This document shows, one piece after another, positions 1,406-48,900 of a DNA stretch of 64,000 nucleotides (positions are counted from its first letter, which is position 1; every line of letters begins with the position of its first letter). Source of the DNA: Paragordius varius (taxonomy: Eukaryota; Animalia; Nematomorpha); assembly GCA_964247055.1 (NCBI GenBank), contig OZ176054.1, positions 7,626,001-7,690,000 on the forward strand, given 5' to 3'. A program made the position numbers and the translations under genes. The notes under the pieces are model-generated. The model did no database searches. It worked only from the letters and a program-made list of their open reading frames with translations, and had not been told where the DNA came from.

Positions 1406-4400
1406 TGACATATTATTATTATTATTATATTTATTGTCAAGGGATTATTTTTTATTTATCCTATTTTTTAATTTGTCGTTTTCGTAACAAAAATAGATAA
1501 ATAAATAACTAAATATTTTCTGTGCGTCCAAATTTTTTATTTGCCATGTACAACAAGTAGTAAGTAAGGAGGAAAAAGATTGAAAGAAGAGCTAACCACA
1601 CCACACGTGTCGTCTCAAACAAAAGATATAAATGTAATAAATAAGGAAAATCCTTGTGCTCCTACTCTCAAAGATGTTTTTTTTGTGCTTCAAGAAGATT
1701 TATATTATTTGATTAATAAATAAATGAATTAATATAACTAAAATAAATTAAATTTGGTGTTTTTTGTTTTCTAGCTAGATGTTTTGGTTAAGGGAAAAGC
1801 ATCTCTTAATCTTTTTCAAGTGTGTAGTGTAGTATAAATATTATACATTATTTATATTATGTAAAAAAAACACAACAACTAATTTAATCAATCACAAGTT
1901 AAATGCGTTAACACTAACCACACAAGACAAAATTACTAAAAGACCCGCTCTTGCTGCATACCATATTATATTAAAGACATTTCCTTAGTCTCTCCTAATC
2001 TCTAATTACATTCATTATATATTAGCTAAAAAGACGTAGCATATCATTGCGTCTTTAATGCGTTATTTTTGGAATGGGAAATCTTGACAGAACCAAAAAA
2101 TACTTGCAATGAAAATATCCTTTGTGCTTAAAATAAATTTCCAAGCGAGCATGATAAGAACAAACATGTTGGTGTGGGATGAATTAACCAAAAAACGAAC
2201 GTAATAAATTTTAATTATTAAGAAGGAAAGGGAAAAAAGTTGGACAGCTAAAATCCTTTTTAAAACTAACAGAAAAATGCAACAAGCACTTTTTAACTTA
2301 ATAATGTGTGTGCTTAGAAAATCAACTCCTCTGTGCATTTATAAACAACATGCATGGACAAGTAATTTAAGTAATTGAATGTAAGAGATGTAATGGTTTT
2401 CATCAAATTTGTACTTTATATAGATGATAGAGTCCAAAAACAATATATATATGATAATTATGAAGATGTAAGTAGGATATGTTTTTATACTAACAAATAT
2501 TTAATGGTCATTACTTAATGTGATTAAATTTTTGTATGGACATTTTATTATTAAATAAATAAGATAGACCACAATTTTTGAATCAAGAAATATAATGGCG
2601 GTAGTTAACTATATTTATTGATTTATTATAAAAATAAACCCGCTAAAAATAGAAATCTAAAACTTGAATAAAGAGTTTGGATTTTGGTTGTGTTTGGTAT
2701 GCAATTTTAAATCGCAATTGTTGATTTCAAGCACAAATAGGGCAATTAGATGTGTTAATATGTTATGGTCGTTTAATATGCCTAAATATTTATCATGTTA
2801 ACTTATTTAAATAATTATTTTTAATTTGCTACTATCGAGCTAATAAGTGTCGATTATTATTTCATATCAGCTAAATTGTATTACGCATAAAATCAAGTCG
2901 ACTTTTTTTAATATTAAGAAAAATATAAAACATTTCTTTTTCAAGTACTGTTTTTATTTTACTACATTGAACCCAAATGTCTCAAGATTATCCTTGTTGG
3001 AAAATGATTAATTAATTATTTTCTATTGTAAAAAAACAATTAAAACTTTCAATATTGTTTTGTTTACGACAAAAATGTATAAATTTTTTGCTACAATTAA
3101 AATGTTTGTTTTGATATATGGTATGTAAAACTTAAAAAAAGTCGTGAGATAACTCTTAAGTCGAATTAATTATTTACATTTTTGACAATTAAAAAATATT
3201 ATTATATCGTATGTGTCCACTTAAAAATTATTTTTTTGCATACTGTTTATTTTTAGTTATAAATAATTCACAAATTTATTTTAATTGGTTATTTGCAACA
3301 ACAAATATTACATAATTAATTATTTGTGTCATTGACTTAAGAGTAAGTTACGATTATATATTCGATTGAACATAAATTTAAATTTAGATAAATTATATTA
3401 AAAAAATTTATAGGTACTTATAATTATCGCGTAAAACAACTTACTAATGTTACATTTTAATTATTTTTTTGGCAGGAAAAAATTAGGATTTGTTAGGCAG
3501 AGGTTAAATTTAAACACATGTATTTTTATTTACAAAAAAAGAGGTTTTTTGAAAGAAAAATTGCTGCTTTTTAAACGAATAAAGTCACAAGAGCAAATTA
3601 TACTAGATAACAAAAGAATCTTTTTGTTACAATATAAACCCGGTTGTGAAAAACAACAAGTAAGATTAACACTCAGTGTCAAATTTTGTATGTTGCAAAT
3701 TAATTTATAATTTACGTTTTTTGTCAAATAAATTGATGCAGGTGAATAAATTCACGTCGCTAAGTCTCTCATACAATTCCTATTATTTTTAACACTTTCA
3801 AAATTAAACAAAAATCAAATTATAGAGTGCGATAATAAAGTCAGAAACGAAATAAAAAAAATATTTACACCTTTATGCATATATATGCATGAAAACAAAG
3901 AGAAGTCAAAATAAGTTTTTTTGTGTTCATTCAATCTTTGGAATAATAATATATATGAAGCGTACGTAAATTTAATAATTGTGTTAAATTTTATTGTTGT
4001 TGCACTGCATCTATTGTGCTAGATTCAAAGGCACCACCTCATCAAATACTAACAAACGAAATTCAATTTTTTCAATTCATCATAAAGATTTAAATTGAAT
4101 TGAATGCGAACGAACAAGACAACCTGTCACCTTTTATACGTATAAATAAATATATTGTCAAAGATTTTAAATGAGAATTAGAATTTTGTCTGTCTGAACA
4201 AATGGATGTGAATGTGTTTGGTGTCTAATAAAAAAATATTTTTTTTTGCTTTTACTGGTAATTATAATAAAGTTACTAGGTTAATTCTTAATCTTCTATT
4301 ACTTACAAAATGCAAATAAGGGATAATTGTGGCATTTTAAATGTGTTAAAATGTAACAATTATAATTTAGAATAAAGGTGATTATATATAGTGTGTTTAA

Positions 4401-21700: not shown

Positions 21701-24700
21701 TGAACTTATGTATATAAATATATTTTTTAAAATCAATAAAATAGATATAACTCAAAATCAAGGCATGAGTTATATAAAATAGATGGAGAGCGGTAAATTT
21801 TCGAAATCAGCTTGGACATATCATTATCATAATGAAATGATTCCAGGCTAAATTTGAAATAACTTATTATAAAAATGTTTTTTTATTATGTCGCGTTAGT
21901 ATAGTATTTTAAATAACCTTTTGTTATATTATAAAAAACTACTTCAATCAAATCCATTTTCTTTAAGGGTAAATCAGCCTTTTTGAGTGCGTGCCTAATC
22001 GCTTCTACAGGTCCGATACCCATTATTGCAGGATCACATCCTAATTTTTATAACATTATAAAATGTAATCCGATTTTAACGCAAAAAAATGATTATAAAT
22101 TTCATATTCAAAGTAAATATGATTGTTATCTGTAAAAAAACATCCGTTATATATTTTACAAACAAAACCACTTAAAAAGGTAAGATTAAACGTAAATTCA
22201 CATACATTGAGAGTTTAACAATTATTTTCAAAAACAAAATTTAAGAGCTTCCATTTTCTCACCAAATACACATTTTAGATAAAAAATATTATTGAATATT
22301 TTTCGTAATCTAACCAGTAACATGATAGGATACTATGCGTGCTAATGGCTTAAACCCTTTTCTTTTACAAGTTTTTCCGTCGGCCAAAATCACTGCTCCA
22401 GCACCATCACTGATACCCTTAAACAAATATTATTTGTCATATAAAAACAATAGAGGAAATTTTTGATTTTTTTATCTGTTAAAACTTTGTAATATATATT
22501 GATATTAACAAAATGATCATAAAATAAAGCAAGAGTACAGAAGCATTCCCAGCTGAAACGGTTCCGTCTTTTTTAAAGAGGGCAGGAAGTTTGGTTAACG
22601 TATCAAGTGTCGTCTCCGGTTTGGGGTGTTCATCTATTGAAAAAACCTTATTTGGATCCTTTTTGGTTGCTATGTTAATGGGACATATTTCGTCATCAAA
22701 TGCATTCTCCTTTTGTGCTAAAAACATTTGCATATTATATTATATTAATATTGTCATCAAACATTGAATATAATAATTTACATATCGTTAAATTTATTTT
22801 AACACTTGGATACAACACATTCATTTCAGTCCTTCGATTCAAATTGGGGTATTTGAATACGCCAGCACTGTTTAAAATTAAATAATTCAAAAAATATGGA
22901 ATGAATTGAAACCATGGCAAAAATTTGCATATTTATAACAGTTTCTATCAATGTTGATTTAAATAAAAAATTAGTTTACATTTTAGCGTTAAACTCAAAA
23001 AAACACTTTTGCAAAAATGTTGTATAATAAAAATGGTGTCGAAGTAGTTTGATATGGAACTTTTTTTCAATACTAAACTTTATTTAGTGATTTTGGCTTA
23101 TTATAATTTTTATTAGGATTGAAGCATAAATTTTAAAAGTGGAACCGTTTTTTTCAGTGCTTTTTTAAAATTTCAACTATGTAGTTTGGGTTTAGATTCC
23201 CCAATTTGAATCAAAGTATTAAACTAAACTATTGCATTTCGATACAAGATACTACCCTTTTAAGGGATAAAAAAAACTTTCGTATATCAAAAATGTTCAA
23301 TATATAGAATGCAATTTTAACTTTAAAATTTTTAATTTAAACTAATATTTAAAGGTATAATTAGTTACCACCAATATACCATTTTTCCATCTCATTTGGG
23401 ATTGGAGTGCATAGGTGTCCGCTTCAAGCTTAGTTATTCCATATTTTTGAGCCAGATTTTCGGCCGTTATAGACATTGGCATATTGACATAGGTATCGGT
23501 TAAACCTTGCCATAAACTATCTTCCAGCTATAAAATGAAATATAAAATAAAGTTAAAAAGCGTTTGCGAAATAATGGATTTTTACTGCTTTTGTGATATA
23601 TCATTAAGAATTTTTGCACTTAATATGAGTTTAAAGTAAATAATATCATTGTATAATCCGACCAGATATTTTGAACTTTGACGCAGTACAAAATTAAAAC
23701 ATATTTGACTGTTTTTTACACCATCTGTGTGGTATATTACACAGCTTCCACAAAAAAATATCCTGATGAAATATATATATATATATACTGATAGGAAAAT
23801 ATCTGGATTATCATGGTGCTTTTGGTTTTAACCCTTACTTATTAAAGAAAGTTGTTTACACTTTTGTGTTAATGCTCCGTATAAAATATGCAAAAAGTGC
23901 GCATTATTATCAAATATATTTTTTGAAAATTAAATGCTTTATTTCAAAATATATCACTAAAATATAAAATAACCTGCATTTAAAAAGCAAAACAATATTT
24001 TTAAAAATTTTAAATTGTTAGATGTGGGCTCTGAAAGTCCCATTTTTGGCTCTTAAATGGATTGCTCTCTTATAGAAAACGCAAAAATTCCGACATTAAG
24101 CAATAATTTTAAATATATGCTAAATTTCGATAACTAAATATATTTTTCATGCATACTTTCAAAAATTAATTTTTAATGATTTTATTAAAGGCTACTACAT
24201 ACTATTTTCATGGAAACGATATGAGCGGTTGAGATGTTTTAATTTTTATATATAATTCGATAATATTATACGTTTTTTTCACTCAAAATTATTGAGTTTT
24301 TTTTACTAAAACCACCAAAATTTGCAAGCAAATAAACCTTTAAATTAAAATTCTTAACCTATAGTAATGTTCAACATCATCAATTTAGAAAAAGGGTTTT
24401 ATAATATCTTAAAGCGTTATACCTTTTCCACCATGTTTAAAAATAGTTTGATACACTTCAACAATATATCTCGAATTTGTTTATGCAAAAAAATAAGAAA
24501 ACTAATAAAAATTAAAGATTAGGAAAAAAAGAAATATCATACCTCCCACCAAATGAGTAAAAGCGTAAAAACTCTAATTTTTTTATATGAAACAGGTTAT
24601 TTCGAAATCATATGCCATATATAATAAATTTTAAATAAAATGTTACGGGAATAACAATTGTTTATATAAGTTTTAGTTTGTAATTATAACAAAAAATGAA

Positions 24701-25737
24701 CTTTCTAAACTTGATCAAATATATATCAAAATATCATAAATTATTTGTTAATTTTAAATTTTTAGGCACCTCTTTTTGCCGCCCTGAGTGAAAGAGCCAT
24801 TAGTCTGAATCTTACGGTGTCAGATTTATAGTTTCACTGCGCGAAACGCTGCAATCATAAGCGGTTTGACCGATCCAAAATCCATTTTTATGTATAATTC
24901 GAGCAGAAAATAAAATATTAACCAATTAAAAATAGGCCAATCTTAGTTTTTTACCGCAAAATGATCCATTTCTTTACAAATTATGGGCTTATTTTTACAG
25001 TGAGTACTATGTCAAATTCTAAAATAATTTTTTTGAATAAATAATAGGTAATTAATATATATTCATAATTAATTAATTTTTTTAATTTCGAAAAGCAGTC
25101 GCAGTTTTTTCTGAAAATCCAGTACTGTACTGCGAAAAACAGCCTATATGGTCACATTATCATTGTATACCAAAATCAACCAAAAATTTATATAAATATA
25201 CTAGGGACATATAAACCTTTAAATCAGTGCCTAATTTTATTCCAAAACGAACATCTCTAAGCATATAAGGTGATAGGCTCATATTTTCAGTTCCACCGCA
25301 CAAAACTACTTCCGAATTATATGTAGCTATTTCCTATAAGTTTAAAAAATATTCAGAAACTTGATATCCATTTATGATGGATTGAAAACCTGATCCACAA
25401 AGTCTATTTACAGTTAATGCGGGAGAACTGACATCTAAGCCTAATTTTAGGCCGACATGCCTGGCAAGATAAATTGAGCTCGGTGATGTCTAATCTTTTA
25501 TCAAAAAACTATTACATACATGTATAACATGACCAACTACGGTAGAATCGATATCAGTAGGCTTTATGTTGTTATATTTTCCATTTAAACAAGCTTTACT
25601 AGCAAATAAACAGAGTTCAGTTGGAGAAAAGTTTTTTAATTTACCACCAAAAGCACCAAAAGGTGTTCTTTTTGCCGCTATTATAAATATGTCTAAAATA
25701 TTGATGATAAATTTAATTTACCTTTAACATGCGTCAT
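18751..25737 (-). CDS. ACAA2: Mitochondrial 3-ketoacyl-CoA thiolase, 405 aa, 10 exons: 25722-25737, 25520-25692, 25361-25489, 25217-25333, 23380-23527, 22539-22717, 22315-22417, 21943-22040, 20965-21119, 18751-18850
   Basis: The spliced ORF is continuous (1218 nt) with thiolase motifs [19 protein letters not shown] (catalytic Cys), VNEAF, GHP (His) and ACIGGGQG (Cys). All introns are GT-AG; introns 1-3 are 29, 30 and 27 nt. Confidence 0.97.
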
Positions 25738-26319
25738 ATTTCAGGTCGATTACTATATAAGGTTGGGTTATTCAAATTTCAAAGAGGTATATTTATTAAC
25801 ATAGGTCAAATATGTTAATTTAATTTAACACCTTTCGTTATTCCGACCTATTTTTCTAAATGTTTTTTTAAAGTAAAAAGAGTTTATGAGTGGAAGCAGT
25901 GTACAAGCTATTTTAATATAAAAATTTTTGGTTTAAAAGACCGATTAAAATTATAGTAGACATGTTTGGAATATAGTTGAGTTATCAATAAAAAATTAAA
26001 GCGTAATCATAGTTTATAGAAATATTTGTTTTCCCTAAAAAATTAATATTTAGGTATCAAAAAAGGATTTAAAAATAAAGTTGAGTTATCAATAAAAAAT
26101 CAGAAAGCATAATCACAGTATTATTTAAATTAAAAACCATTTAAAAAATTGATTTCAAAAAAAAACAATATCTAGGTATCCAGAAAATGGTGACAGGCAT
26201 GCATCCTAGCTTAATAATATGCAATATTACCCCCAATCAAGGTATCTAAAGTCACAGTCTCCACTCTAAACACGTCGAAACGACGCTTGGCGTAATTTCC
26301 TCTTTAAACATGTTTTTCT

Positions 26320-27075
26320 TAATTTGGTTACATATTATAGTGTTTTTAGACCATTAACGTTCAACCGACAATTACGTGGAGATTCATCGCTAATCTCGGT
26401 TGTTAGCAAAATTTTAATTCTTTCGTATTATCCAAAAAGACAATCTTTCCCGTTTCATAAGCCTCATTCAGTAGGTATTTTATCAGAAAACATTCCTATC
26501 ATATGTATTAATTTGGTTACATATTATAGTGTTTTTAGACCATTAACGTTCAAACGACAATTACGTGGAGATTCATCGCTAATCTCGGTTGTTAGCAAAA
26601 TTTTAATTCTTTCGTATTATCCAAAAAGACAATCTTTCCCGTTTCATAAGCCTCATTCAGTAGGTATTTTATCAGAAAACATTCCTATCATATGTATTAA
26701 TTTGGTTACATATTATAGTGTTTTTAGACCATTAACGTTCAAACGACAATTACGTGGAGATTCATCGCTAATCTCGGTTGTTAGCAAAATTTTAATTCTT
26801 TCGTATTATCCAAAAAGACAATCTTTCCCGTTTCATAAGCCTCATTCAGTAGGTATTTTATCAGAAAACATTCCTATCATATGTATTAATTTGGTTACAT
26901 ATTATAGTGTTTTTAGACCATTAACGTTCAAACGACAATTACGTGGAGATTCATCGCTAATCTCGGTTGTTAGCAAAATTTTAATTCTTTCGTATTATCC
27001 AAAAAGACAATCTTTCCCGTTTCATAAGCCTCATTCAGTAGGTATTTTATCAGAAAACATTCCTATCATATGTAT
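26320..27075. repeat. Tandem array, 189-bp unit x4, near-identical
   Basis: Units start at 26321, 26510, 26699 and 26888. I see a single substitution (unit 1 AACCGAC vs AAACGAC). The 3n unit length gives the 258-aa repetitive plus-strand ORF. Confidence 0.97.
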
Positions 27076-27966
27076 CGGTTTAAACGGTAATTCGTTATAA
27101 ACCGACCATTAACGTTCGACTCACAAACACAGAGGAATGATTATAATAATTTGTCGCCAAACTCTACTATTTCTTGCCTAAATTTCAAAAGTCCACTCAC
27201 ATGTATTCCGCCATCTTTATTTCCTCACACGGTACAATAATACATAGTTTTATTATTTTAGGAAATGATAAGTGGCAGTTTAGTGGGCATATCTTTTAAA
27301 ATTTGGTTTAATTAGAGTCTGCACATGGTTGACAGAAATATACCATATGTGCTTGTGTACTACAATAACAAGGGTATTAATGAAACAAACAATGTGCAAT
27401 CATTAATGGTCCAATTTCTAGGGCTTGACCCAAGATGGAGGGCGGTTTAGAGCCCACACATGCTTGACCAGGATTGTAGAACAGCTGTTACGAGGACTTT
27501 ACCCCGAAGGAGAATTGGGTTAATGCCGCCCAAAGCCCTTCGAAAGTTTTTTCATATCTGATTAACGATAACGAGAAAGATTGTAACGGTATTTTATCCA
27601 TGAGTACGTTTATTTATATATTGAATCACAGTCAGAATTTAAAGCAATTAAAGGCGGTTAAAGTTGAAAAGTTAATAGATCACACAAGGTTAGTGAATTG
27701 ATAAACGTTTTATTTAATAAGAGTAGGAAATAAATTATTAATTTTTTCAAAAAACTAAAAAGACGCCATCTATTTATTTATTAACAATCAACCCTCTATG
27801 CAGATTATAAATTTGTGAAATGGCTACTAACCGGTCTAATACCAAAATTATGGAGCTTAATTACGATTATTTATACAGCAAAAATACAATGGTAACTTTT
27901 ATCAATGTAATTAACAACGTCGCATTGTTTGTGTTAAACTTTGAATAAAAACATATAATAGATTTA

Positions 27967-29928
27967 CAGTCATGTCTATATAGAATTGTCTTTTTTTTTT
28001 ATTTAAATGATTATAATTTTTTTTTAATTGTTTTGATGTTTGATATGTCAACTTTCAACATGCGCATTTTTAAGCCTTAAAATAATAGTAGCCTATTTAT
28101 TGTAAGAATTTTTAATTTATAATTAAAAGATATTGCAAAATATTATTCTTGATGCACAACATGCGCATATTGTAATTTTTATCTTTTGTAAAATATTAAT
28201 TATAAAATTTTATTAATAAAGTTTAAACACACATAACCAAAATATAATTTAAAAGATAAAAATATTTATTGATTATAATATTTAAATAAATTTATAATTG
28301 TTTTCATTTTCTAGGGGTTTTCTTTGCATACATTCCAACAAAATATGTGAAGAAAAATTATAATAATTTTTTAGATTTTTTTCCCTTCTCTCTTCGCAAA
28401 GTCTTGCAATTTTATTATGTTGCTCTAGAGGGGTACTACACCGGGGTTTTTTATCATATTGATGTTTAATCTCATGAAAAAAACATTCAATGGGATTCAG
28501 TTGTGGCGAATATGGAGGTAAATAAACTATTTTATTCCTTAGGTCACCTAACACCGCGGCTTTGTGAATAGGTGCATTATCGCAAACTATTATTGAACTT
28601 TCAGGAATTCTTGTTAAACATTCCGTCAAAAAAATTCGAAAATCATCGCCTCTAAAGGCGCCTTCTTTTGTTCTGTAATTAATAACTCCCTGACAACCAA
28701 TCATACATATCAATGAAACATTTTTTCCTAAAATAAATTCAAATTTTACCTTTGTTAAATCCCTCTACAATAGGAGATTTGCCCTTTGGAGCTCTACCCC
28801 ATATATTTGTAAGTTTCAAACTGAAGCCTGACTCATCAATAAAAAAAACTTTTTCCTGTGGAATATCTTTCACCAATCTGGCATAATTATAACGCTTTTC
28901 TATATTCTCTGGGGTGTTTCGTTCCCGAGGTTGTAAAATACACCTCTTTCGAGTAATTTCTGAATCCGAGAGAATTTTGTAAATAGTTGCTCTGCATACT
29001 TTAATATGGTCTGGTATTTGTTCCATTATTTCATCGATTGTTAATTCACAATCATTGTTTATTAATCTTTTGACAGCAACTATTATTTCTGGATTTCTGA
29101 ATTTGTTACGCCGACCAGATTTATTTCTATCAGTAGAATTCCCAAGAATTATTTTTCTTCTTAATATATTTATAGATGTTAAGGACATATCAAAATAATC
29201 CAAAAAATAATTTGAGGGTTTTTCCAAATTTTTGGGATCAAAAAATAATTTTTTAGCTCTATCTATTTTTTCCTTATTCCAAAAATTATGTTCTAAAATT
29301 TAAAAATATTAATACTTTTATGTTTTATTTTTTCACGAGATAATTCATTTTCATTCAATGGAACATCCAAATCAGATACTACGAATTGTTATTTTTAAAT
29401 ACTTGAAGACTCTTCACTTACATCCGATTCAAAAGTATAAACTGAGGGAGCTATGTTTTCCTTTAATATTGGATTTTGTTCTGAATTTTTATTTTTTAAT
29501 ATAAACCTTCAAGTACACTAGCTGCCGAGCAAAGAAGAAATAATGGGTTATCGTTGATATTCATAATTTTTTAAAATAACTCTAGATTTATGATTTATTT
29601 CTTTATATATATAGAGATTAAATGGACATCTGCTTGGGTTTTCTTATATATTTTAAGTGCATGTTAAAAACCCCTAGAAAATGAAAACATATATTAAACT
29701 TGGTTATCATAAATTACATGCGCATGTTGTAGATAAAATGTTCAAGAATAATATTTTGCAACATCTTTTAATTATAAATTAAAAATTCTTACACTAAATA
29801 GGCTATTATTATTTTAAGGCTTAAAAATGCGCATGTTGAAAGTTGACATATCAAACATCAAAACAATTAAAAAAAAATTATAATCATTTAAATAAAAAAA
29901 AAAAGACAATTCTATATAGACATGACTG
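27967..29928 (-). mobile_element. Tc1/mariner/IS630-superfamily DNA transposon, 1962 bp, long TIRs, TA target duplication
   Basis: TA|CAGTCATGTCTATATAG ... CTATATAGACATGACTG|TA. The first ~185 bp of the two TIRs differ at about 3 positions, and similarity extends inward to 28321/29667. It encloses a DDE transposase. Confidence 0.95.
28282..29564 (-). CDS. DDE transposase (IS630/Tc1-like, DD30E), 395 aa after splicing; exons 29507-29564, 29403-29480, 29316-29378, 28750-29292, 28282-28727
   Basis: Motifs FIDESGF, WGRAPKG, GKNVSLICMI, VCDNAPIH and LPPYSPQLNPIE. Removing four GT-AG segments of 26, 24, 23 and 22 nt yields a single stop-free ATG-to-TAA ORF of 1188 nt. Confidence 0.88.
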
Positions 29929-31536
29929 TAATAGTTACAGTTTCAATTTCTGAAAAGGTTGATCAATTTCAGTATGTTAATATACTGTAGTAAATTTGTA
30001 AATTCTCGAGTTAACCTAAATCGATAATGTCACTTGTTTTCACACAGAGCAAAAAACGATTTTACCGTAAAAAGGGTTATTTTCCCATTCTGTTTTAGGC
30101 ATATCTTAAATGCATAATTAGGGACTTCCTGACACATTTGTCAGATGTAATTCTGCCTCTATTCATTTTGCGAATGATACGGTATTATAACAGACGATTC
30201 CCAGGTCACTTCGCAAACTTTAAAATTTGGTTAATGTTAAAAAATGGTTTGCAGATGATTTTAATTACAAACTCACCCGAAAACTGAGAACGATTAGGGG
30301 GCCAACAACGGGTGTTCTATAAAACAGTAAATATTTAATCCAGTTTGAGTAAGTATACATTGCTAGAAAGTTATTGTTTTTTGCCAAATAGCATATACAA
30401 CAATGGGCTGTAATATTGGATTATAGTTTTTTTTACTTTTTATTATTAGCTAATAATAATTCCCTGTGCTGCATATGCAATTTGTCAATAATTAATAACT
30501 TTCTAGAAATGTATACTTACTCATACTGTAATCATCCTTAATATGTAATAGTTCTTTATGACATAGTTTAATAGTGTTTCAGTATTATATTAATTTTAAA
30601 CAATATTTCATTTTTTGAAAATATAAAAAATATAGGTAATTTATAATCTTAAAAAACACATAATTTATTTTAAGGTAAATATGAATTGTCAAGGGTGAAT
30701 TTGCATTGTAAATGGTATATACCTCTAGATAAATATATTCCAACACATATATGCGCAACATTCTTGTGAAAAAATACAATTTAACAATTATAAATTATTG
30801 TTATAATATTGATTCTTAGGAATGAGAACTTAAATTAATAAATAATATATATTTGTTATACATTGAAAATCAAGTACTCAGGATTAATGGTAAATTTGTA
30901 TTTTTATTGTCAATAAATATTTTCCTCATATTTTCTTGAATAATTAGCGATTACTTTCATTTATTGTAATATTCGATTATAAAGAGCCATTAATTATATA
31001 AAATCCTATAATTAGCGAAAAAATTGTAAAAATATAATTCATTTATTTATATCAAGACAGAGTTTCGTTCATACACATTTTTTAAGTGGTCCAGAATTAG
31101 TACAAGAATGAATTATTTTAAAAATTTGAGTTATGTTTTTAATAGGATTTAATTGGGGAATATACAGAGGTATATATTATTTTTATAAAATACTTTATGA
31201 TATTAATTTATCTTTTTAATTTGACAAAGTTAGATGATTTTAACGAATTCATTATTAATTTTGGTAATGTTTGCATCAAATTATTCTAAAAAAACTAATA
31301 AATTTCTTTTGTTAACATATCTATATTCTGGCAATTTTAATTTTCTAATTCCTTAAATAGATGCCTACATATGGATTAAAACTATATTATGTATCATATT
31401 TTGGCTTATGTGTTTTTCAGAAAACTAATAATAATTATCCATCAAACTTAAAATTAATCATTAAAATGCCGTATGCACAACACATATTCAATGTTACCAG
31501 CTCTATCATAAGATATATAAGAAGAAGGGACATATA

Positions 31537-32079
31537 CCATTTGCACTTCAAGAGTGTCCTTGAACAATTCAAGTTTGTCCTTGAACACTTCAAGTTGGTC
31601 CTTAAAATTTATAAATTTTGATTTAACTATAATTTTTGCATCTATCTTTTTATTTTATTATTTATTAACATAATTTTCTTTATTTATTATATATTTATTC
31701 ATTAAAAAATAAAATTTTTTATTGAAAAACCACTTTTTGGTTTCAAACTATATTTTTTCAATTAAACAAAATTATTGACTTTTTAATGTTTTCAATGAAA
31801 AATTTTAATTAATTACCCAGAAAACTTAATATGTTTTTTCATTTGGTGTCAAAATCTTATAAATATTCAAAATTATTATAAGAAATTAATAAAGATATAC
31901 GGTTTCTCAAAGATTAAAAGTTGATGTCGATTTAAAATTTATGTTAAATTATAGAAAATAGGTTAAAAACAATAAAATAGATGAATTATTTACGATTTGA
32001 TTGATAAAAGTTAAAAACAAAACAAAAAAGTCAAATGACCAACTTGAAATGTTCAAGGACACTCTTGAAATGCAAATGG
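31537..32079. mobile_element. MITE with CCATTTGCA termini and 21-bp subterminal repeats, flanked by TATA
   Basis: Left CCATTTGCACTTCAAGAGTGTCCTTGAACAATTCAAG is mirrored by the right-end reverse complement. Related to the 38391-38796 element; a solo right end is present at ~30689-30715. Confidence 0.75.
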
Positions 32080-32725
32080 TATATTAAAATATGCATTTAT
32101 TGATCCGCCGAGTTTACTTTTTTATTTTAATAATTTGATATTATTTTTCAGTATGTACTGTAATTAGATTAAAAATAATGAAATTTTTATATAAATACAA
32201 TACATAGAAAACTATTATGGATCTTTGTATTTTAATTGGACAGGATTAAATTTACATGACTGTTGCCATGTATGAGATTTTAAATTAGTTAGATATTTAA
32301 TTAAACAGTATTTTATTACAATATTTAAAAATTAAAAAAATGAAAAATTCATACACGGCTACTAACATGTCAATTAAATAGCTATTTTAGCCATTAAAAA
32401 TAGAGATATGGCGTATTAAGGTGCTCGGTACTGTAATTAACTAGCCTTAGAATTGATTTCTTTGAAGCATGCGATGAATCATAATTTTGTAAATTTACGA
32501 TTAAAAACCCTTTGTAGGGTCTCTTTATTGTGCTTATAAAATTTAAACTTTAACACAGGCCCAAAATCATCAATCATATGATTTACTCTTACTTCATAAT
32601 ATATGTTCATGTTCGTTAAACTTAAAAAAATACTTTCATTTCACAAATAAAATAATTTTTATTTCAAGGTATATATACACAAAACATTGTATTCACAGTA
32701 GAAAACATATGTGGAGAAGAGATAA

Positions 32726-33351
32726 CTAATATCGATTAGGGGCTCCACCGCGACCCATACCCCTTCCTGGGGGTCCACCTCGTCCTCCTCCACCAGGACC
32801 GCCTCGACCCCCACGGCCACCTCGTGGAGCTCCGCGTCCTCCCATTCCCCTTCCACCACCGCCTCGAGTGGCTGATGATGCGGCTTTCGTCGCATACTTT
32901 TTGAACATTGGGGCATTTTTTAACATGTCGGGGAGGATCATGAAACGAATCTTACTTCCACGAATATATACTTCATTTATGTGAGACATGGATCCATCAC
33001 TATAAGAATATATATATGGATTAGAGTATGAAATATGCAATCCTAGTCTTCAAATGAAGAGTAGGGGTAAAATAAGGAGAATTATTAATTTAACCTATTT
33101 TACCTATTTATGGGCATTGGCAAATAAAAATCTCTTTATTGTATATGCTATGTAAAAATATATAGCATTGCAATATATATAAAAAAATATAATCTATACC
33201 GGAATGTAGCCATAACATCTTGCATTTGACAATTCATATTATCCTCAGCTTCCAATAATTTTCCACGATATATCTCACCAATGTTTGTTTCGATTGTAAC
33301 AATATGGCCCTCAGCCTCATGCATAACCTTTATAGGAACTCCTATGGACAT
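32726..33351 (-). CDS. SNRPD3: Small nuclear ribonucleoprotein Sm D3, 141 aa; exons 33200-33351 and 32726-32999
   Basis: [18 protein letters not shown]...[24 protein letters not shown] is the SmD3 signature. One 200-nt GT-AG phase-2 intron; RG-rich tail. Confidence 0.97.
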
Positions 33352-33898
33352 GGTAAAAGTATGGCGCTTTCAAATAAATGAATGTATAAACCAAAGCGTG
33401 GGATGCTACCAAAAAAACAAAATATTTATTTTTGGAATAATTCATAAACACTATTATCACATAATTAACATTTTAAAAAAACTTTTAGCAATATATTTGA
33501 ATAGTTATTTATTCTAACAATCAGCAGTAAATTAATGCAAAACAAATTCATATTGCAAAAAGCTTTTGCATATTTGTATTACTATAATACTCACTTATAA
33601 AGTCATTTAAAATCGGCGATGAATAAAAAATATTAGAACTTTCGCAATTCCTTTATTCAAATAACGAAGCAGTATGCATTTTTTTAAAAAATCTTTATCA
33701 TGAAACAATCTAGCACAGTAATAGGTACTCAAGTGGTTTTTTATGGCCCTGAATTTTTAATAATTTATTTTAAGTATTATCATCTGCAAATCTGTCAAAC
33801 AATTATGGAATTTTTATCGGTATTGTTCGTAGCCTTTATTTTATTTGGCGAAAGTCAATGAAATTAGCATGTAGAAATAATGAGGGATAATAAATATC

Positions 33899-34389: not shown

Positions 34390-37260
34390 TTATTATTATT
34401 ACATTACATGTTTTCACTCGTGAGAGCGGTCATGTTATACAACCTGTCTTGCCCGTCTTCTGCATTAAGCTCGTATTCTGCTACTCTTTTTAATGTGCCT
34501 ATCCATTTTGTTTTAGGCCGCCCACGTCCTCGTTTTCCGTCAACTACATGACTCTCTCCTTTCAATGTGCCCGAAGGTAGCCTATTTTTTGACATTCTTT
34601 CTACTATAGGTTTAACATCTGTGCTCCCACAAATAAATCTATTCTTAACTCTATTACTTGTTACCCCACACATCATTTTAAGCATTTTCATTTCCGTGAC
34701 TTAAAATGTCTTTCTTCCTATTTCTTGACGCCCCAGGTCCGTGAATTATACATCATTGTGGGTTGAACATCTGAACTGTATATACCTTTCACTCTAACAT
34801 CAATATTTCGATTACATAACACGCTTGAAATTTTCTTCCAATTTACCCATTTGCTCTTTATTCTTAAATTAATATCATCGGTCAAGGATCTATCTGAACC
34901 TAACATTGACCCCAAATATTTGCACCTTTTTTACCCCTCAGAACCCAACTAGCATCAACTTCCATTTTTTGTTGTGGACCCCCAAAAGTAATAAATTCAG
35001 CTTTTGCTTTGTCTACTTTCAGACCGTATTGAATTAGTATAATAACCCATCTGTTTACCGTTTGCTTTAACTCAGTCAATGAATCAGACATGAGATTTTG
35101 TCATCTGCATACATTAAGTACCAACCTACTTACAGTAATGACCTTGGCTACCTCGTCATACAAATTATAAACAATAAGGGGCTGAGTGATGAGCCTTGGT
35201 AGACTCTATGCTTTATTGAAAAAGGCTCTGATAAACCTTGTGAAGTTTTAATCCTGGAGGTGTGGGATTTGTACATTAATTGTAACAATTTAATATAACT
35301 TTCTAGCATCTTTTTACGACGGAGACTCCCCTAAATAGTTTCTCTATGAATCCTGTCAAACGCCTTCTCTATGTCAATAAAAAACCCGGCTAATTCTTTC
35401 TTTTTTCATTGTGTTTTTCAATCAACCTCCTAACCGCATATATAGGGTCTGTTGTTGACTTTCCTGGCATGAAACCAAATTGATATCGTTCTATAGATAT
35501 CATTTTCCTGATTCACTTTTCAATTATTTTTTCAAACAATTTCATGGTGTGCGACATTAGTTTTATCCCTCTATAGTTACTACAATCATTTATATCACCT
35601 TCTCCTTTTAAAGGTACAGTTAAACTTCCTTCCATTCAACCGTCATAAGTTGTAACAATTTTATTAAAAACACGCTCCAAGAAATTTAATCCAGCGCTTC
35701 CAAGCACTTTCAAACAATTTATATTTATGTCGTCGGATCCTACAGCCTTGTAGTTTCGCATTTCTAATAAATTGGATTCTACCTCATTTTCTGTAATTGC
35801 TTCTATTGGCATAGTAACTTCGACTGTGTTTGGTAAAAATATCTCGCCTACCCCTTCATCTAAACTCACAAAGTACTCTTTCCACCTTTTTAATATTTTT
35901 ATTTTCGCACAGCAAGTTTCCATCCTTTCCTTTTGCAGTCGCATAACCTAGTAAATCCATCCTGCGTTAATTCCTTTGCTGCGCAACTTTTTACACTTTG
36001 TTTAAACCTTGCTTACTATTTAACTCATCATAAATAAATTCATCTTTTCTTTCTTGACCTGGCCGACTACTTTTTCAATTCTTTATTTAAACATCTATAC
36101 TTATCTCTATCAACATCATTCCTTGTATGTCTCCATTTGTCAAAAGCCTTACCTTTTTTTCGTGAAATCAATATTATCCTTTCATCGTAAAGCCAAGCCT
36201 CTCTGTATACTTGAGTTTTGCCGCCTTTAGATCCACAAACTAGAGTTCCTGCCTTTTTGATTAACTGGCTGACTTTATCCCACTCACCATTTAACCCACC
36301 ATCCTCAGACAACCGTATTTCTTTTATAAAAGCATGCTTAGTATTTAATTTCTTTGAACAAGGATCAATGTGTTTTGACTTTTCTTTCATATTAAATTTA
36401 CAAATAAGTAAATTGTTGCGAGCTAATTTCTAAATTTGGTATAATCTTACAGTCTAATACAAGCTTCAACTCTTTTAGGACTAGTATAAAATCTATTTGT
36501 GAATTTTTATGCCACTTTTGTAGGTTATTAAATGACTCTCTTTTTTCAAAAAACGTGTTCGCTTAGCAAAATTGTGGGATTGTGCAAATCTAAGCAAATT
36601 AATTCCTTCCTCGTTTCTTTCTCCATAAGAATGTCCCCCGTGCCATATTTCAAAAGATTCCCTACTTAAACCAAGATTACCATTAAAATTTACATATAGA
36701 AACTTGACTCTGAGCTGAGGGAGAGCGACTAATATTTCGTCTAGAGTCTCGTGAAATTCCACTTTTTCTTGTTTTGATAGACCTATTTGCGGGGCATAAA
36801 TACTGAAAACTGTTATTACGTCGTTACCTACCAAAATATCTAAAATCATGTTTCGGCTGTTATAGCGTCTAACCTCTTTACTGATTGGACAATTTAGGAA
36901 TCATGATAACACACACTCCATTTCGTCCGTCACTTTCACCTGAATAATATAATCAATAATTTTCTTCGAAAGTCCTTGCTCCATTTCCGCGGTAACGAAT
37001 CTTTTGTAATGCCATAATGTATATGTTTAACTTTCATTATTTTCACAATATCATTTAACTTACTCTTCAACGAACCAACATATAAACTAGCAAAACAGCA
37101 TCCCATCTTCCTATATATTGTCTCTATATTATTGGCCACTACTATAAAACCAAGGCTGGCCGGCCTAACAAAAGTGTAAATATCTCTTTCAATACTTGTC
37201 AAAACCAAAAGCACCATGATAATCCTGATACATTTTAAGAGTTTATATGATCCATAAAGA
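34390..37260 (-). mobile_element. Degenerate near-full-length RTE-clade LINE (APE endonuclease plus reverse transcriptase)
   Basis: Fragmented ORFs: endonuclease-like (VFSIYAPQIGL, GHSYGERNEEG, ITYKSG) and RT/thumb-like (KAVGSDDI, KGIYSSDVQPTMMYNSRTW, GRGRPKTKW). (TAA)n 3' tail near 34390. Many stops and frameshifts. Confidence 0.85.
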
Positions 37261-40729: not shown

Positions 40730-41830
40730 TGATGCACCATCGCAAGCTATCCAGCTTTTTATTAAATAGTTCTTTAACAATACAATCTGTTTAGTAGTTT
40801 GAGTTGTTGGAAATCCAGATCAATCTTTTTAGCCCATGTTAAACGTGGGCGACCGGGCTTATTGTTACCGGGTGGAATGATGTCGAATGAGGTCCTAATC
40901 GGATTATCAGGATTCATACGGTTAAGGTGACCGTAGTACCACATTCTTTTGAATTGAAGAATTTGTCTATTGGCTCGATTTGTATGTGATTGCGGATATT
41001 TTGGGGATCTAGTTGCGTTGACATCAGGCGTAGTATGCGATTTTCCGCGCTGATAAAACGTTTCTCTTGAGTTTGTAATAATGCCATGGTTTCTGTGGCA
41101 TATGTCAAAACTGGTCTTATGCCCATTTTATAAATTAAGCCTTTTGTTTTGAGGGGTAAGTGCCTTTGTTTTAGTATGTATTTTAGCTGATGATATCCAG
41201 GTACGATTTATTCTTCCATTTATTGAGCTATTGTTTGATGAGTCTGATGTTATTTTGTCGCTAAGATAGGTAAACTTGGTTACCACTTCAAAGCTTGAGT
41301 TACTAAGGGCTATGTGCTTAATTGATGGGGGCGTTGAATGCTGCACGCATGAATCGCATTTGAAATTTATCTGTTCGGATAGTTTGTACATTTTTTGTGA
41401 CCCCATTTTTTACTTTCCAACATTTAATCAGCAAACTCCCCATGAGTAATTAATTTCATTGTGGGGTTCGCCCGTTACCAGAATTTTACTTTTATTTTCA
41501 TTTATTTTGAATTCAAATTTGGTTAGCTGTTGTTGCCATTGTATAAACATTTTTTCTAAGTATGAAATCGAGGTTGTGGTAAGCACTATGTCATCTGCAT
41601 ATACAATTTCATATGGCAGATTTAACCGAATATCGCGAGTAACAGCGTCTAATATTGTAATAAACAGCAAGGGGCTTAAGGCTGATCCCTGATGGCGTCC
41701 TACTTTAATTTCGAAGGAATCGGAATCTCCCATATGGGTTCTGACAAATATTTTAGAATTTTGATAGAGAAGCATAATAGCTGAAATTGATTGTTCATCA
41801 ACTATGAAAATTCGAGCTATGTTTAGGTCT
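40730..41830 (-). mobile_element. 5'-truncated RTE-clade LINE fragment (RT core)
   Basis: GRHQGSALSPLLF...YADDIV reverse-transcriptase motifs, then FTYLSDKI and IRPVLTYATETM; frameshifted. Confidence 0.85.
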
Positions 41831-45900: not shown

Positions 45901-48900
45901 AAATTTTTAATCTTCTTTTTTTGAATAGTAGATTGCAAAGGTTTACGATGTATACCTTTTTATCAAGTCATCATCAGGTCGTTGTTTCTCCAGCATGAGC
46001 TAGCTTCCATATTCTTGAGCGAAATAACTTGTGATCGAGACAGTCGTCCTCGGTCAATTGATTTAAGTTTAAGTCATGGCCGATTTTTTTTCCCAATCAT
46101 GATATGGTCTGCCTCGTCTTAAATTGCCGTTCGCATGAAAGGTTCTAATTTTGTTAATCCAACCATTTGAGCGTTCAATATGGATTTATAATTGTGGTAC
46201 TGATTGGTGAGACATGAGTTGAGGATTTTTCTTTCTATTTCACATAATTTATTTTCATTAGCTTGATTTAAGGGCCAACATTCGCTAGCATATGTGAGGG
46301 CAGGGCGCATGGCAATCGTGTAAATTTTCCCCTTGTTTGGGTTTGAAATGTGTTTGTGTTTCATTATATACTTGAGTTGATGGAATTTGGCTCATGCTTG
46401 ATGTGTTCGTGTTGTTATGGCGTTTTTAATATTAATATCAGCTGCTATTGTGTCACCCAGGTAATTGTATTTGTTCACTATCTCGATGTTTATACATGGG
46501 AGGTAGGTAGTTTGTGTGGGATTGTCTGGGTTTATATCTGGTGTTGCACAAGCTTTACATACAAAATTTTCAATGCCTAATAAACTTCCTTTAATTTGTA
46601 AGAACTTTTTGTGGACCCACAGTTGGCATTTAGTGCATTTGATGGAATTAAGTTTCACTTCAGAGTGAAAAATGGAGCAAGGGAATTTTATTATAGGTAT
46701 AGGTGTGCCTGTGATTAAAGCCTTTGTTTTATCTGTGTTAATTTTGAGGTATTTTTATCAGGTGAATTTGTTAAGCTATATCCAGTAATAGTCTTGGGCT
46801 CTGTGGATGTGACCAGCCCAATGTAAACGGTATTCACGGATTGCTGCATTAAGCGGTTTAATATTTAGGGTTTGATATGGACAAAATTTGGATTATAAAT
46901 TGTAGATGTTAGGGTTATGTACGAAAGTATGGCAGGACGTAAGCGGCCATAAATATTTTAGCCTTTGAACTGAGTAAAAGGTATTTATTATTAATTAGTG
47001 GTCGCAAATTATTTTATCCAGCCAGCTTTATGCCACCATCAGCATCTAAAGTATCACCAAGGTATGTAATTTTGTCGACAAATTCGAATAAAGTGGATGA
47101 CTCGGGGCCAGGAGATGCTATGGGTATTGTGTTTATTGTATTGCACTGGGAGCAGATAAAGTTTTTGTTATGATATAAACTTTTTAAAGTGGAGCATTTT
47201 ATATGCACCCATTTTAAAAGTTTGTTACACTTTATTGAATTTCACCTTACATTCATAAGCACAAGCAAGGTATTTTATTGTGTTCTTGTTTATATCGCAG
47301 CTTGGTTTTATTGTATTCATTTTTAGACGAATTTATTTTGGTCTTTCCATAAATTTATTTTTTATTAATTCATTTTCTGATGTGGCGCACAATATTAAGT
47401 CATCAACGTACAAAAGTTCAAAAGGTACACCATTTCGAATGTCTTTTGTGATCTCTTCCATAATCTTGATGATTAAAGGGGTGGTGGATGCTATATAAAA
47501 AGGGATGGGGTTCGTATCGCCAACGCTTGTACACGGATTACAGTTGAGGGGTGTTTATATATTGCTTCTATCGTTTGAATCATATTTTCCTCTATACATT
47601 GCCTTCTGAACGACCAAGTAATCAGATGTTGCGGGACTGAGTCAAAAGCCTGTCACATGTCCACAAACGCGTAGTGGAGTGGGATATATCTCAGGTCAGC
47701 TTTTGTAATTGACGGATTATAAATATAGCATCTATGGTCCCCTTGTTTTTTGAAAAGCCAAATAGCATAGAATCTATGCTCCAGTGTCGACGGATTCTCT
47801 TGGCTAACAGATTTTCAAAGATTTTTAAACCGAGAAAGTTGGAAACGTTAAAATGGCATCCTTTGCACTTATAAATTGGGATTGTATAGCTTTTCAGCCA
47901 ATCAGTGGGTATGATATTATCTATTGCTATCTTGTTCGCAAGATTTTTAAAATAATCCACAAATACATTGTGATCCAGGGCTTTAAATACTTCATAAAGG
48001 ATTTACATTCAAACTAAGAAAGATTGCCGTTAAGCGATCAGAGAATCAATGAGAAAAATCGGTGATGAAAAGGGCAAAGTGTTAGAAAATGCTATATCTG
48101 GCCAATCTGCATATAGATAGGAAAACTTAATAATATTAAAACCGAAACAACTGCCATACGGTCCGATAATAATAATAATAATATATCCCACGATGCAGAG
48201 ATTATCAAAACCACATGGGTATAATCACTTTTTCAATATTTTCAACAAGAAGTTACAAGCCGCCACCCAGTAAATGCTTCATTTCAACCCTTTACAAATG
48301 ACCAAATTGAATTTCGTTTAAAAAATCCGAAAAATAACAAATGCCCAGGTTTATCAAAACTCACAGATGAAGCATTTAACGCTTTGGATCACAATTTATT
48401 TGTTGATTATTTTGCAAATCTCGCAAACACATTAGATAATATGATTCCCAGTGATTGGCTATTACAATCCCATTAATATAAATTTTTTATTATTTTATAA
48501 TCCTAGGTGTTAATAACCTTCAAGATCAATATTTTTTATTATTTAAATGGCAAAAATGTCATAAAAAGATTCAAAATATCTTGAATGAAATAAATTTTAT
48601 TACTACAGGCCACATACCCTACAAACTTAAAGCGTATCGAAGGGTTTATCGTGCTTTAGCTTGTACTTATGTTACTTACAGTCCAGATGGGACCGAACTT
48701 TTAGTCAATCTTGGTGGTGAACAAATTTATTTGTATGATGCAACTTTTTGCTTTTTACCCAAACCTCTCAAGAGATTTCCTTTATTAACACCCGAACATA
48801 TGAATAGACTAGGTAATCATTTTTGTTAATTTTTTTACCTTGGATATAATACTTTATCTAATATATAATAATCAGTATGTATGCTACATTTAATAATGTA

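Follow-up and report, generated by a model that had tools for sequence, protein, structure and literature searches.

Background

In animals, an intron length of about 30 nt is usually assumed to be the lower limit. GT-AG introns of 22-27 nt have been described in two groups of parasitic animals, Myxobolidae and Dicyema, and that account gives published animal introns of less than 30 nt for Myxobolidae and a dicyemid only, mentioning neither Nematomorpha nor transposon genes (PMC13644364). In the Tc1 transposon of Caenorhabditis elegans, the transposase gene has one intron of the size usual for its host (41 nt); its RNA is mostly unspliced in the wild type, and HRPC-1/STM-1 repress the splicing (PMC12632400). 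A parallel has been drawn between Tc1 and the Drosophila P element, in which retention of the third intron controls transposase output (cited in PMC12632400). For three Tc1/mariner elements of Paramecium (Sardine, Thon and Anchois), the published transposase open reading frames (ORFs) are those obtained after removal of predicted introns, the number and size of which are not given in the available text of that article (PMC3464196). Here we describe a Tc1/IS630-type element that spans 1,966 bp, including its TA duplications, at positions 27965-29930 of a 64,000-nt stretch of the genome of the nematomorph Paragordius varius (contig OZ176054.1, positions 7,626,001 to 7,690,000; this stretch is called the window, and all positions count from its first letter). 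The element is likely to have been active recently, and its transposase gene would need four micro-intron splicing events of the kind predicted for genes of its host.

Structure of the transposase gene

The minus strand has four segments, 26, 24, 23 and 22 nt long, with GT at the start and AG at the end of each. When all four were excised from the region running from 29564 to 28282, 1,188 nt remained, which correspond to 395 codons and a terminal TAA, with no internal stop and no other in-frame TAA or TAG. Retention of any one segment led to a stop in the unspliced frame, directly preceded by GLY, SSI, ...KF or GKI. The first-pass annotation of the sequence had reported the same four segments, at the same positions and with exactly the same letters, and the 395-residue ORF, the stop caused by each retained segment and the restored junction GFNK/GKNVSLICMI were all reproduced. 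It had also warned that the gene would look dead to ORF scanners, which agrees with the ORF listing (translation table 11), in which the gene is represented by no more than two broken ORFs (162 aa and 143 aa).

All parts of the predicted gene lie on the minus strand. Exon 1 (29507-29564, 58 nt, GC 38%) contains the ATG and the acidic start of an N-terminal tail; this is the only ATG with a path into the frame of exon 4. It is followed by putative micro-intron 1 (29481-29506; 26 nt, GTTTAT...TTCAG, GC 11.5%), which brings a stop if retained, by exon 2 (29403-29480, 78 nt), as delimited by reading of the ORF, and by putative micro-intron 2 (29379-29402; 24 nt, GTATTT...CGTAG, GC 21%), the length of which is a multiple of three and which contains an in-frame TAA. 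Exon 3 (29316-29378, 63 nt) ends in a basic patch, KIKHK, and precedes putative micro-intron 3 (29293-29315; 23 nt, GTATTA...TTTTAG, GC 9%). Exon 4 (28750-29292, 543 nt) was matched to the IS630 profile and encodes the first catalytic Asp (D219, in FIDESGF) as well as a putative helix-turn-helix DNA-binding region. Micro-intron 4 (28728-28749; 22 nt, GTAAAA...TTTTAG), placed by homology and profile colinearity, is in phase 1 and lies within the catalytic domain. Exon 5 (28282-28727, 446 nt including the TAA) encodes the second Asp (D297, in CDNAPIH) and the Glu (E328, in LNPIE) and was matched to Pfam DDE_3. The GC content of the four introns (9-21%) was lower than that of the exons (24-38%). 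The introns were not tandem duplications of their flanks, since flank identity was at chance level, and no copy of any of the four was found elsewhere in the window.

The gene had been called intact. This is so in that the ORF is open and the catalytic residues are kept, but not in the sense of identity to the family, because the window copy has three private base changes, which lead to two amino-acid differences (V40 and V138) from the consensus of four public sequencing runs. The word is therefore used here for an open frame with its catalytic residues, not for a consensus-identical copy.

Intron 4 and the relatives of the transposase

Profile comparisons placed the predicted protein among the DDE transposases. 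The exon 5 product matched Pfam DDE_3 with E = 4.5e-17, above the family cut-off, and in the NCBIfam IS630 profile the exon 4 product corresponded to positions 44-173 (E = 1.1e-8) and that of exon 5 to positions 183-297. Against the bacterial IS630 equivalog NF033545, the two pieces scored 35.0 and 59.6 bits separately, where the threshold for a whole protein is 100 bits, and the transposase is treated here as a eukaryotic relative and not as a member of that equivalog. Matches to HTH_Tnp_Tc3_2 (E = 0.005) and HTH_32 (E = 0.012) were weak and below the Pfam cut-offs; the N-terminal region aligned with the N-terminal helices of relatives. The catalytic domain of Sleeping Beauty (5cr4) was also matched weakly (E = 0.01). 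In an alignment of the element protein with 74 full-length relatives and the nearest relative described below, the columns of D219, D297 and E328 were invariant in 75-76 of the 76 sequences. The second Asp and the Glu are 30 residues apart, a spacing found in the Gordionus relative and in five others, while it is 34 residues in 62 relatives.

The nearest relative found was LOC135930258 of Gordionus sp. (P0001, locus L001), with 38-46% identity. It shares with the element the DD30E spacing and the motif PPYSPQLNPIE and differs from it in having a single uninterrupted exon of 642 nt across the site of intron 4; it also differs upstream, where it is degenerate, with a stop close to the position that corresponds to residue 134. 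The metagenomic and insect DDE_3 relatives, and also a firefly protein, differ in being intron-less, the metagenomic and insect ones as whole ORFs that fill contigs of 1.1-1.5 kb. A word-indexed protein search and an exhaustive search of representatives returned nothing above about 52% local identity; neither the spliced protein of the element nor its ORF pieces are therefore present in those collections. A scan of metagenome contigs with exact patterns, in which 0-30 nt were allowed at the intron 4 site, gave no match, and a protein-seeded metagenome scan gave only relatives at no more than 48% identity.

These relatives provide a direct comparison for intron 4. Across the junction, the spliced protein aligned without gaps to the 74 full-length relatives, and the motif N[KR]G[KR]N[VI]SL was restored. 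In a tblastn comparison with Gordionus genomic DNA, 211 aa aligned in one frame with 0 gaps. In the IS630 profile, the two matched pieces are separated by positions 174-182, nine in all, which is exactly the number of residues present there in the spliced protein. In other words, the alignment to intron-less relatives proposed in the first-pass annotation came out exactly colinear and gapless for this intron, with GT and AG at its ends. By comparison, when random AT-rich insertions of 22-26 nt were drawn from the window, they could be excised exactly as GT..AG segments in 0.33% of trials. Because the protein is colinear without gaps with intron-less relatives and with the profile, the 22 nt represent a clean insertion between adjacent bases of an ORF that was ancestrally uninterrupted. 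The identity of intron 4 as an intron is thus strongly supported by sequence comparison, and its de novo gain is the most likely reading of the same comparison; it would have been inserted at an AAAG/GA site in the previously uninterrupted ORF of the catalytic domain.

The N-terminal tail and introns 1 to 3

The alignment with relatives starts at residues 61-71, where exon 4 begins, so exons 1-3 (66 residues) make up an N-terminal tail specific to this lineage. The tail is acidic and is followed by a basic patch, KIKHKK, that extends across the junction of intron 3, and removal of this intron links the patch to the FWNKEKI helix common to relatives. Several relatives have an acidic tail and a basic RK-rich patch ahead of the shared helix, similar to the spliced form. 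The first in-frame ATG of exon 4 is at residue 102, and an upstream start is therefore needed if the first helix is to be kept. When all paths from any ATG were searched exhaustively, with GT..AG introns of 20-31 nt and no more than three of them per path, a single route led into the frame of exon 4, and this was the path given by the first-pass annotation. Introns 1-3 are moderately supported by the continuity of the ORF, their low GC content and their likeness to the predicted micro-introns of the host. The intron reading put forward in that annotation is thus well supported for intron 4 and moderately for the other three.

Introns of neighbouring genes

The neighbouring ACAA2 gene contains GT..AG segments of 30 nt and 27 nt, and its exon pieces, one of which is about 79% identical to the human protein, corresponded to residues 27-81, 82-124 and 125-163 of human ACAA2 (4c2j_A), with no residue missing or added. 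Reading of the sequence also suggested a 29-nt segment after the first 16 coding bases of ACAA2 and, by reading only, three 22-nt GT..AG segments at the 5' end of NSE3. By eye, the introns of these genes and of the transposon have a common pattern, GT[AT][AT]...[TC]AG, and very low GC content. The SmD3 gene (SNRPD3; 32726-33360, minus strand) lacks micro-introns and has one intron of ordinary size (about 0.2 kb), which shows that both classes occur in the host. The host thus appears to splice introns of the 22-30-nt class, as confirmed in ACAA2 by colinearity only. The earlier proposal that the element follows the micro-intron format of its host agrees with these data: its segments match the host class in size and ends, and the 27- and 30-nt segments of ACAA2 were verified by colinearity.

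In Gordionus sp., the 5' end of a fucokinase-like gene (L001, 7024-7500; OX940787.2) contains, by reading, three GT..AG segments of about 39-42 nt, which look like a longer version of the 22-30-nt class of the window.

Copies of the element in public sequencing runs

The element was present at 99% identity or more in four public runs, which came from four studies and carried four different organism labels. Contig pieces of 150-890 nt with 0-3 differences spanned all four segments, no contig had a joint at any segment, and no intron-less version with at least 90% identity was seen in the four runs. Since every copy seen contains all four segments, the master copy that was amplified already had them.

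Word depth in run X1 was about 1,070 in the central body; it rose to 2,000-4,000 in the two sub-terminal parts and reached 33,000 at most within the inverted repeats, with 26,000-33,000 at 28040-28109 and 29790-29859. Because the depth of the repeats far exceeds that of the body, it appears that an abundant family resembling miniature inverted-repeat transposable elements uses the same part of the repeat. A deletion joint from 28600 to 29434, which skips 28601-29433, was present in X1 at a depth of 349. Together, the depth profile and the deletion joints indicate that, beside full-length copies, the family includes copies with internal deletions and many miniature derivatives.

Of the 18 exonic variants that were not private to the window copy, 7 were synonymous, compared with an expectation of 20% (p = 0.05). 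The density of variants in introns was 3.6 times that in exons (p = 0.02), a figure based on five variants from two contigs only. A diverged copy in run X7 had three changes within intron 2, and both the GT and the AG were kept. The first-pass annotation had expected the introns of other copies to vary more than the exons while keeping GT and AG. The greater variation was found, in two contigs, and so were the conserved ends of intron 2 in X7, but the AG of intron 3 is lost in most copies of X4 and in part of X1, as discussed below.

A joint from 27943 to 29946 was considered as a precise empty site and was rejected, as about 38 nt of flanking sequence are replaced by 7 other letters; it is more likely to come from a paralogous repeat copy. 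In runs X1-X10, which come from different studies and carry at least five organism labels, the share of the element's sampled words that was present was 0.55-0.85. Such presence under many labels could be due to DNA of this animal, as a parasite or cobiont, in other samples, or to horizontal transfer. The ratio of element depth to the depth of one flank-joint contig was about 27 in X1 and about 17 in X3, which hints at the same genome sequenced to different depth.

Evidence for and against four spliced introns

Several observations weigh against a working transposase gene with four introns. When positions 24150-30000 were compared with the RNA-labelled runs X18-X21, which have the same species label as the best element-bearing run, only two 18-nt fragments of the terminal inverted repeats (TIRs) were found. 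For runs X1-X7 no kind is recorded, and those that contain the element look like DNA data; if any were RNA, the unspliced contigs would point to poor splicing. The majority variant of run X4 at 29293-29295 is TAG>CAA, by which the acceptor of intron 3 is lost, and this change also removes the in-frame stop and does not restore the frame of exon 4. In X1, AG>AA at the end of intron 3 accounts for about 9% of the depth. Copies that have lost this AG cannot splice at it, and consequently either many copies are dead or intron 3 has been misread. No homologues of exons 1-3 were detected, which makes the homology check used for intron 4 impossible for introns 1-3, and a path such as theirs has a chance of about 1-3% of arising at random. 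Finally, two of the private changes in the window copy are missense. As to the RNA runs, ACAA2 was used as a positive control, and X18-X21 contained no ACAA2 contig at 90% identity or more; because the control was equally uncovered, these runs are uninformative rather than negative. The absence of ACAA2 from them fits a label that names the host organism and not the animal of the window.

Among the alternatives, the one that survives best is that only intron 4 is real. The path through exons 1-3 would then be due to chance, and the gene would have another 5' structure, would start at Met 102 or would be N-terminally defective. It is in line with this that the homology of relatives begins exactly at exon 4, that exons 1-3 have no detectable homologue, and that some ATG path arose in 20-27% of trials when the upstream sequence was randomised. 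However, a path with at least 211 coding nt, as observed, arose much less often, with frequencies of 0.8% when the upstream sequence was dinucleotide-shuffled and 3% when it was replaced by random segments of the window, and the observed path is the sole one in the real sequence. A start at residue 102 would also lose the first DNA-binding helix (FWNKEKIDRAKKLF) that the relatives share, many of which have an acidic tail and an RK-rich patch like those of the spliced form, and the contrast in GC content between introns and exons is sharp. For these reasons we regard it as unlikely that intron 4 is the only intron.

A second alternative, which appears improbable, is that all four segments are insertions acquired during decay, that their GT and AG ends are coincidental, and that the family is dead and non-autonomous and was mobilised by transposase from another source. 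In its favour, spliced RNA was not observed, the relatives are intron-less, the AG of intron 3 is lost in some copies, and the internally deleted copies, with the far commoner ones that consist of TIRs only, show that non-autonomous amplification does take place. On the other hand, decay would require four independent GT..AG insertions of 22-26 nt, all very AT-rich, at the rate of 0.33% each given above. It would also have left the 395 codons free of any other frameshift or stop and all of the DDE residues in place, with segments that match the verified micro-introns of the host in size and ends, and an intron-less version at 90% identity or more was absent from all four runs. That the segments are artefacts of assembly or sequencing in the window is refuted by the independent contigs from four runs and four studies that cross them with 0-3 differences.

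We therefore return to the reading in which the gene has four introns, which is the most likely one. The segments would be spliceosomal GT-AG micro-introns of 22-26 nt, of the same class as the 22-30-nt introns of the host. The pre-mRNA would be spliced four times to encode the 395-residue transposase, every unspliced form would stop early, and introns 1-3 would lie in a lineage-specific 5' extension that is also the source of the start codon. Both the removal of the four segments from RNA and the activity of the product are predicted from the sequence. How the introns arose is a separate matter. It is possible, and we suggest it tentatively, that the element recently gained its micro-introns of 22-26 nt de novo, one of them cleanly within the catalytic core, and that it depends on the ability of its host to splice introns below 30 nt.

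Termini and inverted repeats

The element begins and ends with CAGT termini flanked by TA duplications, and has inverted repeats of about 200 bp. The left TA target-site duplication is at 27965-27966 (directly read as ...AATAGATT TA CAGTCATG...) and the right one at 29929-29930, also by direct reading; both are immediately outside CAGTCATG...CATGACTG. The left TIR, which starts with CAGTCATGTCTATATAG, occupies 27967-28171 on the plus strand and the right TIR 29715-29928 on the minus strand (inverted-repeat pair I1/I3). At both ends, at 27965 (plus strand) and 29930 (minus strand), the sequence is TA followed by CAGTCATGTCTATATAGAATTGTC, and the terminal 26-mer TACAGTCATGTCTATATAGAATTGTC occurs only at these two places in the window, where 0 are expected by chance. 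The near-identical TIRs and TA duplication reported in the first-pass annotation were seen again here: the repeats are 98% identical over 162 nt, with the similarity continuing out to both termini, and TA is present at both ends.

Each arm contains two copies of the motif AACATGCGCAT, as direct repeats at 28057-28067 and 28158-28168 in the left arm and on the minus strand at 29718-29728 and 29827-29837 in the right arm. The motif had 9 matches against 1.1 expected, and its spacing is symmetric, at about 93 and about 195-200 nt from each terminus. This paired layout recalls elements with two transposase-binding sites at each end, and may have the same role here. The inverted repeats of C. elegans Tc1 are 54 bp long, as compared with about 200 bp and two motif copies each in this element.

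Upstream of the ATG, a 31-nt segment (29667-29697) is complementary to 28291-28321 at 28 of 31 positions (inverted pair I4; blastn E = 3.7e-6). The second of these stretches lies at the 3' end of the transposase ORF and contains its last codons; the upstream segment may be what remains of an inner repeat, or may take part in RNA pairing. A second copy of the element was not found elsewhere in the 64-kb window by blastn. Judged from its sequence, this is a young and probably autonomous DNA transposon of the Tc1/IS630 superfamily. Its cut-and-paste mobility is suggested indirectly, by the high word depth, the near-identical copies and the deletion derivatives in the public runs.

Genomic context

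The GC content of the window is 27.3%, and the window contains animal genes including ACAA2, SmD3 and a WDTC1-like gene. A ciliate origin with an alternative genetic code, to which the AT-richness and the intron sizes might point, was rejected on account of these genes, of the TAA at which the transposase ORF ends and of the lack of other in-frame TAA or TAG. A myxozoan host seems unlikely, given the identity of about 79% between the ACAA2 piece and the human protein, whereas a gordiid horsehair worm is the probable host judged from the GC content, the Gordionus origin of the nearest transposase relative and the 39-42-nt segments read in that genus. For comparison, the G. montsenyensis genome has a GC content of 26.93% and consists to 64% of repeats, mostly DNA transposons. 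Units of about 190 nt are repeated in tandem about four times at 26324-27100, where the ORF listing gives a 258-aa repetitive ORF without a convincing Pfam match. Three regions with GC content of 30-36% (34400-37220, 41130-41780 and 46390-47960) contain minus-strand ORF fragments that resemble retrotransposon endonuclease/reverse transcriptase.

Significance

If the four segments are spliced, the element would be a dated case of intron gain, as intron 4 is absent from all relatives and the family can be traced through copies that are 99% identical. It would also be a natural test object, with four introns, for animal splicing below 30 nt. For annotation it would serve as a warning: such a family would be taken for dead by repeat maskers and ORF-based classifiers, and its junctions would be handled poorly by aligners whose minimum intron length is set by default to 20 nt or more. 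If the gain was de novo, micro-introns in this animal lineage would have two sources, the shrinkage of old introns and insertion, and host splicing below 30 nt could gate the output of transposase and restrict the activity of the element after transfer to other hosts.

Comparison with described systems

The elements and introns described previously each share part of what is predicted here. The Myxobolidae and Dicyema introns have similar lengths; they differ in being introns of host genes in other phyla, and the present host keeps ordinary introns as well. The Paramecium elements, like this one, have Tc1/mariner ORFs with predicted introns of host type, in a host with tiny introns. They differ in that the host is a ciliate and the elements are excised as DNA from the somatic nucleus. 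C. elegans Tc1 shares a transposase gene with a host-sized intron, but has one intron of 41 nt and a DD34E arrangement, where the present element is predicted to have four of 22-26 nt and DD30E. Given the 41-nt intron of Tc1 (PMC12632400) and the predicted introns of the Paramecium elements (PMC3464196), the novelty attributed to this gene in the first-pass annotation was overstated. That annotation had also suggested regulation by intron retention. By analogy, the efficiency of splicing may limit the output of transposase here, and such regulation is plausible but not new, because C. elegans Tc1 is a worked precedent (PMC12632400). The Drosophila P element belongs to another superfamily and has an intron of ordinary size; control of transposase output by intron retention is demonstrated there, and may operate in the Paragordius element through introns of 22-26 nt.

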